Assembly (NCBI GenBank): GCA_964106645.2
Contig: OZ067040.1
Strand: one strand, 5' to 3'
DNA length: 64,000 bases
Origin: Podarcis pityusensis
Taxonomy: Eukaryota
The first letter of the stretch is position 1, and each line of letters begins with the position of its first letter. Below are positions 33,704 to 35,511 of this stretch, one piece after another. Made by a program: the position numbers and the translations under genes. Below the pieces are notes generated by a model. That model was not told the origin of the DNA. It searched no databases and saw only the letters and a list, made by a program, of their open reading frames with translations.

Positions 33704-35406
33704 ATGACTGTCTGTTAAGGACGCTTTAAACATGCACAAAGCAAAAAATTGTATCATGTAACATAGACCAAATTACTCCAGATACTTTAAAAAGCAAGAG
33801 TTATTTAGATATGCCACTTAAGCTGAGAGCTGCTTCATACTTTATATTGCCACTCAAATACAGCAGAACTCCAGCAGTGTGTTTGGTTGTATATACATAT
33901 ATGTATGGAAGGAGGACACACAACCACAAGCACGCTGGGAAACTAGGATTGGCCACAACTCCCCGGCAAGGGTACAATGCATATTTCAAAACAGTGTTGA
34001 CTCCAGAGAATGGCAAGCTCAGGCATCTGTCAGGACACACTGCCCTAGTCATGTTGTCATCCCCGCTTTGTTTTGCAAGCCCCATCTTTCTCAAGGGAAC
34101 CCAGTAAGTGTCAAGGCCCACAAAATTCTGCAAGATGTGCATCTTTCTTTCACACTTTGTATGTGTATCACAGCAAGTACCAGTCAGTATACCTGGATTG
34201 CCACAAAAAGTATGAGGCAGCTCAATGACATGCAGAAACAAGGTAATAATAAATGCCTTTAAAATATAGGTGCCCTTATTCAGAAACTCCTGTGTACACT
34301 GAAATGCACATGAAATTCCCACACACAGTGATTTCCCCTCCATTTCAATGTCATGTCTGTGGGCACACAGAGTTGTTTCTCTACAGATCTGAATGGCAAA
34401 GGAATGGCAGCAAGGGACTCGCTGTGTATTTTGGAGTCCCTACATCTGTAATGCATAACTGAACCAAAGCAAGAATATTTAAGGTGTGCACCTTATTTGA
34501 AGGCCCTTAAACTTGACACATTAATAGGAAATATTACCTAGATGTGGAAAATAGTATTATCTAGATGTAGACTCCTAACCATATCTACTAAGGAGGAAGT
34601 CCTACTGAAGTCAATGTGGCTTACTCTCAGGTAAGCGGCCTCAGTTCATTACTTCTGTTCTGATTTACTGCAGACATTGTTCATATCTATAAACAGCCGA
34701 CTTGTTTTTCCTCCTCCTTTACTCCCAATATTTAAAACAAATAGCTGTAAATGCCACAAAAATATGTCACCAGATCATCTAAATTACTGATATATTTCAG
34801 TATTCCAATGAAATCTGTTCTGTTAGGAAAATGACTCATGGAAAAGCGAACAAATATTTGCATACAGTTCTCTTGTACCAATTTAAGGAAGCAATATGTT
34901 AAACTAAAACAGTTATAAACAAACAAATTCTTGACTGCAACGTAAGAGCTTGAGCGATAAGATACAAAAGGAAACTTTGGCAGTTACCTCCACGTCACTT
35001 GATCTTGACCTTTACTCTTTAGGGCTTGCTAGATGGACTTGACAAGGGCCGGAGAACCAACCAAATCAGACTTGGCTTTGACTTTGGAACTTGAGCAAAT
35101 GTCGGAAAGCCGAAGCCTTAACTTGGTGTTGTGGCTTTGTCTTTTCCTTGAAAAAGGACTTCCCCTCTTCCAGTTTTCTTTTTATCTTTTTCCACCCTCC
35201 CTCTTTATTCCTTGAAGCTTGAACTTTAAGGTGTCTTTTGGCTTGCCTGCTTGGACTCTATCTAACCAGGTTCATTCAAACTTTGGGGTGCTTGCCAGCC
35301 ACTGTGGACTGCTTTACATTTTCTGAGACAAAGAAATAAATACATTAAGTTAGGACGCAATAACAACAATGCACCTCAATAAAAAATACAGTGACATAAA
35401 GGATAT
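33704..35406 (-). other. SRSF12: U12-type (minor spliceosome) intron 2 of SRSF12, apparent AT-AT termini
   Basis: 5' ss ATATCCTTT (35398-35406) is a perfect U12 consensus; branch TCCTTAAC with the branch A about 12 nt from the 3' end; the frame-preserving junction CA|G gives RGFAYIQFED. Confidence 0.88.
34988..35322 (-). other. SRSF12: Putative poison (PTC) cassette exon of SRSF12 inside the U12 intron
   Basis: Branch CTAAC near 35349-35353, polypyrimidine tract and cag|AAAATG acceptor, donor GAG|gtaact; in-frame TAG at 35262-35264; purine-rich with AAAGACAAA at 35136-35144. Confidence 0.75.
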
Positions 35407-35511
35407 TGTATATAAGCAAATCCTCTTGGGCGTCTTGTGTAGAAGTCAAGCGGAATGTATACGTCTACTACAGGGCCATACCGACCAAATTCACGACGCA
35501 AATCCTCAGGC
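35407..35511 (-). CDS. SRSF12: SRSF12 exon 2 (105 nt)
   Basis: cttcag|GCCTGAGGAT...TATATACA|atatccttt; translates [34 protein letters not shown](Q), including RNP1. Confidence 0.96.

Follow-up and report, generated by a model that had tools for sequence, protein, structure and literature searches.

We examined a 64,000-nucleotide (nt) stretch of the Podarcis pityusensis genome (contig OZ067040.1 of assembly GCA_964106645.2, hereafter "the window"), whose minus strand carries the SR protein gene SRSF12. Positions 35322-34988, within the intron that splits the RNA recognition motif (RRM) of this gene, probably form a genuine alternative exon, non-coding and deeply conserved, whose paralogue is exon 3 of SRSF10, through which that gene autoregulates. 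This nested exon of 335 nt has only borders of the major (U2-type) spliceosome and stops in each frame; the intron around it belongs to the minor (U12-type) class. SRSF10 provides the only link characterised so far between SR protein dosage and the minor spliceosome. SRSF12 has the same type of intron and a paralogous unproductive exon, and it may be a second SR gene tied to minor-spliceosome activity. If it is, this bears on how defects of the minor spliceosome spread to the splicing of major introns. We found no description of a minor intron or of a "poison exon" (an exon whose inclusion brings a premature stop) of SRSF12 in the literature searched.

Intron 2 (33704-35406; all coordinates are on the minus strand unless stated otherwise, and a slash marks a splice junction) separates exon 2 (35407-35511, 105 nt), which encodes the first half of the RRM and ends in phase 2, from exon 3 (33600-33703, 104 nt), which encodes the second half. 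These two exons match positions 13-44 (E 5e-7) and 46-69 of the Pfam RRM_1 profile, respectively; intron 2 therefore interrupts the RRM. At the end of exon 2 lies the U12-type 5' splice site ATATCCTTT (35398-35406), which is unchanged in the five aligned SRSF12 genes, in zebrafish SRSF12, and in bird SRSF10; its core RTATCCTT is found twice when both strands of the window (128 kb) are counted, and the sole copy on the gene strand is the exon 2 border. At the other end of the intron, the U12 branch site TCCTTAAC (33714-33721) is found 10 nt before exon 3, with the intron ending in CAT at 33704. This motif occurs only once in the window, both strands included, precisely at the exon 3 border on the gene strand, and it is unchanged in six species, squamates, bat, gerbil, and frog among them. 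The assignment of SRSF12 intron 2 to the U12 type is thus supported, and a productive mRNA requires the minor spliceosome for the joining of exon 2 to exon 3. The terminal dinucleotides are AT-AT in squamates, bat (CAT/A), and gerbil (TAT/G), and AT-AG in Xenopus (CAG/G); the distance between branch site and exon 3 is constant in squamates, bat, gerbil, and Xenopus. Just after the branch site, two AGs (33713-33712 and 33709-33708) are usable by the major spliceosome; the first is conserved in amniotes, and mammalian gene models take it as the acceptor, adding the residues "LVI" to the protein, which we confirmed on bat DNA.

The nested exon opens 84 nt into this intron, at a U2-type 3' splice site (35323-35356) composed of a CTAAC branch (35353-35349), a pyrimidine tract, and CAG (35325-35323). 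Among the 374 AGs between exons 1 and 3, it is the only one passing strict criteria (at least 14 pyrimidines out of 17, a pyrimidine at -3, an AG-free zone, and a YTRAY branch). The exon closes at the U2-type 5' splice site GAG/GTAACTGCC (34979-34990), of the form GAG/GTAACT. According to a rough matrix, this donor ranks 6th of 360 GT sites, a strength reached about once per kb; the U2 donor of exon 1 (CAG/GTAAGC, 39397/39396) comes first and a cryptic donor within exon 2 (CG/GTATGG, 35482/35481) comes 26th. Splice motifs alone are thus weak evidence, and it is conservation that lifts the nested exon above chance. Entered in phase 2, the exon reads KCKAVHSGWQAPQSLNEPG, i.e., 19 codons, before a TAG (35264-35262) situated 274 nt upstream of the 34988 donor and thus more than 50 nt before the downstream junction; all three frames are interrupted by stops. 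An earlier note on this DNA, made from the letters alone, had proposed the SRSF12 identity, the U12 donor, the acceptor, the 335-nt exon, the phase 2 entry, the TAG, and the GAG/gtaact border, and we find each of them on the minus strand where it had been placed.

The content of the exon is marked by a purine-rich block (35133-35212, exon nt 111-190) reaching 90% A+G and 82-99% conserved. It harbors an AATAAA (35204-35209) and the window's only copy of AAAGACAAA (35136-35144), a motif listed as an SRSF10 binding consensus (PMC9022966); on these grounds, the block is a candidate enhancer dependent on SRSF10/12. An Rfam scan detected no RNA family in the nested block. At 23 nt past the U2 donor, one finds a degenerate U12-like 5' splice site, GTATCTTAT (34957-34965), with one mismatch. 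A U12-like GTATCCTAY located 24-27 nt past the nested U2 donor is intact in Anolis, Xenopus, and zebrafish SRSF12, as well as in finch SRSF10 (loci L002, L003, L004, and L006 examined), and degenerate in the lacertid, the snake, and the bat; this site may be a U11-binding element.

A first hint that the block was more than intron came from a search with the RS-domain exon, which retrieved mammalian SRSF12 models, some with an odd N-terminus matching the translated lizard block, in a frame where the lizard has a stop. We then compared the SRSF12 loci of a bat, Anolis sagrei, a snake, Xenopus laevis, zebrafish, and a gerbil; for SRSF10, the finch gene was used. With BLAST, window positions 35537-34962 align to the bat at 78% identity (636 columns, E 1e-153) and 35520-34958 to Xenopus at 76% (E 5e-116), and about 750-780 nt can be aligned to the snake at 93% and to the anole at 89%. 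The other 1.1 kb of intron 2 gave no BLAST match in either bat or frog; in Anolis, a 45-nt piece was all that aligned. Broken down by segment, identity over the nested exon is 98% in anole, 97% in snake, 85% in bat, and 81% in frog, compared with 95, 97, 89, and 88% for exon 2 and 69, 90, 66, and 51% for the middle of the spacer between exon 2 and the nested acceptor, in the same order. Judged by these alignments, the conservation of the nested exon is about equal to that of the RRM-coding exon 2. The earlier note had made its proposal depend on how 34988-35322 is conserved relative to the intron; as we find 81-98% identity there and an unalignable rest of the intron, this ground for refutation clearly does not apply.

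This conservation is not that of a coding sequence. The indels within the nested block measure 1, 2, 4, 7, 8, 10, and 19 nt and are not multiples of three; together with the stops in every frame, they indicate that the block has been kept as an RNA or DNA signal and not as protein. What is conserved in all five aligned genes is the ATATCCTTT donor, the CTAA branch, the pyrimidine tract, the CAG, the first 60 nt of the exon, two purine-rich blocks, and the GAG/GTAAYTG donor. The CTAA, the tract, and the CTCAG are unchanged in tetrapod SRSF12, zebrafish SRSF12, and bird SRSF10, and the nested donor is kept as AG/GTAAC or AG/GTAAT in all SRSF12 genes, zebrafish included. As a separate observation, 14 small contig sets (X1-X14; 44-153 million letters; four related organisms), none of them on record as RNA, contain 95-97% of window positions 34940-35520, which would fit conserved-element capture or unspliced RNA.

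In SRSF10, exon 2 carries two donors, a minor one and, further downstream, a major one; the latter is spliced to the non-coding exon 3, and SRSF10 itself promotes that route, as shown experimentally by Meinke et al. (2020, eLife, PMC7244321). The account of SRSF10 autoregulation given in the earlier note agrees with that paper, in which Srsf10 is named as the only SR protein gene with a minor intron, and SRSF10 exon 3 is described as containing a GA-rich enhancer (nt 17-60), a site of polyadenylation, and a minor 5' splice site that is unused or rarely used (PMC7244321). The two genes share the essentials: their RRM is split at the identical codon, with the identical ATATCCTTT donor and a like U12 branch site before the next coding exon, and in both a homologous non-coding exon, with purine-rich blocks and premature stops, opens at the same acceptor, CTAA...CTCAG/A(A)ATGTAAAG. 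An nhmmer profile of the SRSF12 nested-exon alignment matches finch SRSF10 (L006, 4120-4571, E 8e-26) from the exon 3 acceptor to beyond the exon end. This full-length match and the common acceptor identify the lizard nested block as the paralogue of SRSF10 exon 3, older than the gene duplication; indeed, since the nested exon is present in both zebrafish SRSF12 and bird SRSF10, it has been kept since before SRSF10 and SRSF12 diverged.

The wiring around this shared exon differs from one gene to the other. In finch SRSF10, the major donor lies about 63 nt past the minor donor and an intron of about 400 nt follows before exon 3, whereas lizard SRSF12 has no downstream major donor and its acceptor comes after 84 nt. 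Moreover, the SRSF12 nested exon ends in a conserved U2 donor, whereas SRSF10 exon 3 ends in a U12-type GTATCCT, of which the lizard has only a degenerate copy. The SRSF12 module would appear to be a variant wiring of the known SRSF10-type arrangement. The suggestion of the earlier note that SRSF12 keeps an SRSF10-type switch thus holds for the U12 borders and the homologous nested exon, but not for the downstream major donor, which is absent in squamates. A regulatory function has been demonstrated for SRSF10 only. With its missing downstream major donor and the U2 donor that closes its exon, SRSF12 offers a natural comparison with SRSF10 of which elements the mechanism needs.

With no SRSF10-style downstream major donor and a spacer of 80-84 nt, the lizard circuit cannot be wired in the way of SRSF10. 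In squamates and Xenopus, where the spacer measures 80-84 nt, there is no GT at +19/20 after the minor donor; zebrafish SRSF12 does have a donor at +20, followed by a 2-kb intron, and the mammalian models P0015 and P0023 imply one at +19/20. The middle of the lizard spacer (35357-35397) is poorly conserved (51-69% with anole, bat, and frog, the bat having a 38-nt insertion). The GT found at +32 (GAG/GTGCAT, 35375/35374) would leave an intron of 51 nt and is not conserved in Anolis or bat. Two other candidates were discarded. The cryptic donor inside exon 2, put forward in the earlier note as a U2 route into the nested exon, is present in the lizard at a synonymous Arg site, but it is absent in snake and bat (CGATATGG) and was rejected as a conserved route. 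A tiny U12-type intron of 84 nt, bounded by the exon 2 donor and the 35322 acceptor, was rejected as well, as the conserved core upstream of that acceptor is CTAAY and not TCCTTAAC and stands 27 nt from the AG.

Since U12 and U2 sites cannot pair with each other, the nested acceptor has to be paired with a U2 donor, and upstream of it exon 1 alone offers a conserved one. The most likely entry into the nested exon would then be from the exon 1 donor, exon 2 being skipped. The exit, through GAG/GTAACT, would lead to exon 4 or to the AG that follows the U12 branch site. An mRNA made in this way would read about 41 codons and then a stop, and would be expected to undergo nonsense-mediated decay (NMD). 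Under this scheme, exon 2 would be defined by the binding of U11/U12 84 nt upstream of the nested acceptor, and two exclusive routes would be available, the minor spliceosome joining exon 2 to exon 3 or the major one taking the nested exon; low minor-spliceosome activity, or an SR protein bound to the purine-rich block, would favor the unproductive route.

Public gene models give a glimpse of these junctions. Mammalian models from three pipelines join the nested-exon donor to exon 3; one of them, the bat model P0008, was confirmed to use the nested-exon donor on bat DNA. Sheep and rabbit models link exon 1, in the wrong frame, to the nested exon and skip exon 2, a joining that looks transcript-driven. 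Annotation pipelines have caught parts of the nested exon in mammals as spurious protein. The models that mishandle intron 2 include P0015, P0058, P0041, P0054, P0044, P0020, P0025, P0034, and P0002; some continue into the intron ("QYPLF...") and others trim or skip exon 2 for the sake of GT-AG borders. With intron 2 mishandled in so many public models, SRSF12 protein sets are unreliable around the RRM.

Several observations weigh against a regulated nested exon in SRSF12. The gene models are only predicted, and several of them are plain workarounds that force GT-AG borders; a search of assembled transcripts with a peptide derived from the nested exon returned gene models only. The sheep and rabbit models, moreover, use an acceptor inside the nested exon and not 35322. 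The AG after the U12 branch site, to which the nested donor would be spliced, is not preceded by a pyrimidine tract. Squamates lack the defining element of the SRSF10 mechanism, the downstream major donor, and the position of the mapped SRSF10 enhancer (nt 17-60) is not purine-rich in SRSF12 (57-60% purine). Finally, in the gerbil Psammomys obesus (L007, 10696-11160), the nested exon aligns for its first ~190 nt only, with deletions, and its acceptor motif was not found there by pattern; the erosion past ~190 nt means that the exon can be dispensable, and the element may be decaying in rodents.

The first of the alternatives is that of a composite exon or alternative 5' splice site, which we regard as unlikely. 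Exon 1 would be joined to exon 2 as usual; should the U12 donor then stay unused, exon 2 would extend through the spacer and the block to the 34988/34987 donor, itself joined to the AG that follows the U12 branch site. The minor and the major donor, separated by 419 nt, would compete, and the 35322 acceptor would be idle. Such a scheme follows the same logic as SRSF10, where the minor donor precedes the major one, and makes exon 2 skipping unnecessary; the frame of exon 2 meets a TGA 30 nt into the spacer (open reading frame 35376-35501), and in the contig sets of the four related organisms, 95-97% of the words over spacer and block are present as one piece, although these sets may be DNA. Conservation of the acceptor speaks against it, as the branch, tract, and CAG of 35356-35323 are 82-97% conserved versus 51-69% for the spacer, and this acceptor is common with the experimentally used one of SRSF10 exon 3, which is unexpected for an idle site.

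The AATAAA of the purine-rich block raises the question of an alternative terminal exon: cleavage and polyadenylation within the block or past it would yield a short non-coding transcript able to evade NMD, as has been described for exon 3 of SRSF10. The hexamer (35209-35204) is kept in lizard, snake, anole, and frog, but it reads AGTAAA in the bat and AATAAG in the gerbil, no U- or GU-rich tract stands close after it, and strong conservation runs on for 215 nt, up to and including the conserved U2 donor; we consider this alternative improbable. Strong conservation could also be that of an intronic regulatory element never included in any mRNA, whether an enhancer or silencer of U12-intron splicing or a transcriptional enhancer, an idea to which we give very little credence: conservation begins and stops at splice-site motifs, the paralogous SRSF10 block is a proven exon, and gene models splice from the nested donor. 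As for a chance pseudo-exon or a protein-coding alternative exon, donors of such strength do occur about once per kb and mammalian models translate the 3' part of the block, but the former is excluded by 81-98% identity over 335 nt out to frog and the latter, in the lizard, by stops in all frames (including the one read as protein in mammals) and non-triplet indels, so that this last explanation is hardly credible.

The non-coding alternative exon that we favor can be set beside two known classes of events. Ultraconserved poison exons of SR genes serve autoregulation by alternative splicing coupled to NMD (reviewed in PMC6884704 and PMC9956241). Like them, the SRSF12 nested exon is a stop-containing alternative exon conserved like coding sequence; classic SR poison exons are, however, cassettes between U2 introns, whereas this one is located within a U12 intron, so that it can pair with neither of the constitutive splice sites that flank it. 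Hybrid U12/U2 arrangements that enforce mutually exclusive routes also exist, for example in the alternative exons of MAPK8-10, where the incompatibility of U12 and U2 sites limits which exons can be joined and where both isoforms are productive. SRSF12 would differ from such cases in that one of its two routes is unproductive.

It is conceivable, albeit doubtful at this stage, that tetrapod SRSF12 has rewired an ancestral SRSF10-like module: the major donor would have been lost and the spacer reduced to 80-122 nt, making the binding of U11/U12 and that of U2AF/U2 physically exclusive and leaving two all-or-none routes, so that SRSF12 output would report the ratio of minor to major spliceosome activity and, in an ectotherm, might report body temperature. 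The use of SRSF10 exon 3 is temperature dependent in mammals (PMC8522700).

The rest of the gene was read directly from the letters, the spliced coding model being searched exon by exon; coding exons 1-5 give a protein of 256 residues. The coding part of exon 1 (39397-39461, 65 nt, ATG at 39461) ends in phase 2 and can be aligned to the exon 1 of Anolis, snake, frog, gerbil, and zebrafish SRSF12, and exon 2 is 88-97% identical across snake, anole, bat, and frog. Exon 4 (33264-33405, 142 nt) shows 72-87% identity to all tetrapod loci. The coding part of exon 5 (32164-32518, stop at 32166-32164) encodes the RS domain, and its product differs by one residue from that of Zootoca vivipara SRSF12 (P0037). 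Compared with the bat, exon 4 is 78% and exon 5 is 69% identical. In the squamate "isoform X2" models (P0037, P0036, and P0040), an internal acceptor around 32458 in exon 5 removes 20 residues of the RS domain, and some frog SRSF12 models (P0051, P0046, and P0043) have an additional in-frame exon between exons 1 and 2 (LSDDQFDPELQL). Within intron 1, on the strand opposite to SRSF12, positions 37244-37301 (+) give a tRNA-like Rfam match (32 bits) that is probably a tRNA-derived short interspersed nuclear element. Elsewhere in the window, GC-rich islands (59-66% GC) at 5000-6000, 18000-21000, and 44000-45000 are likely promoters of neighboring genes.

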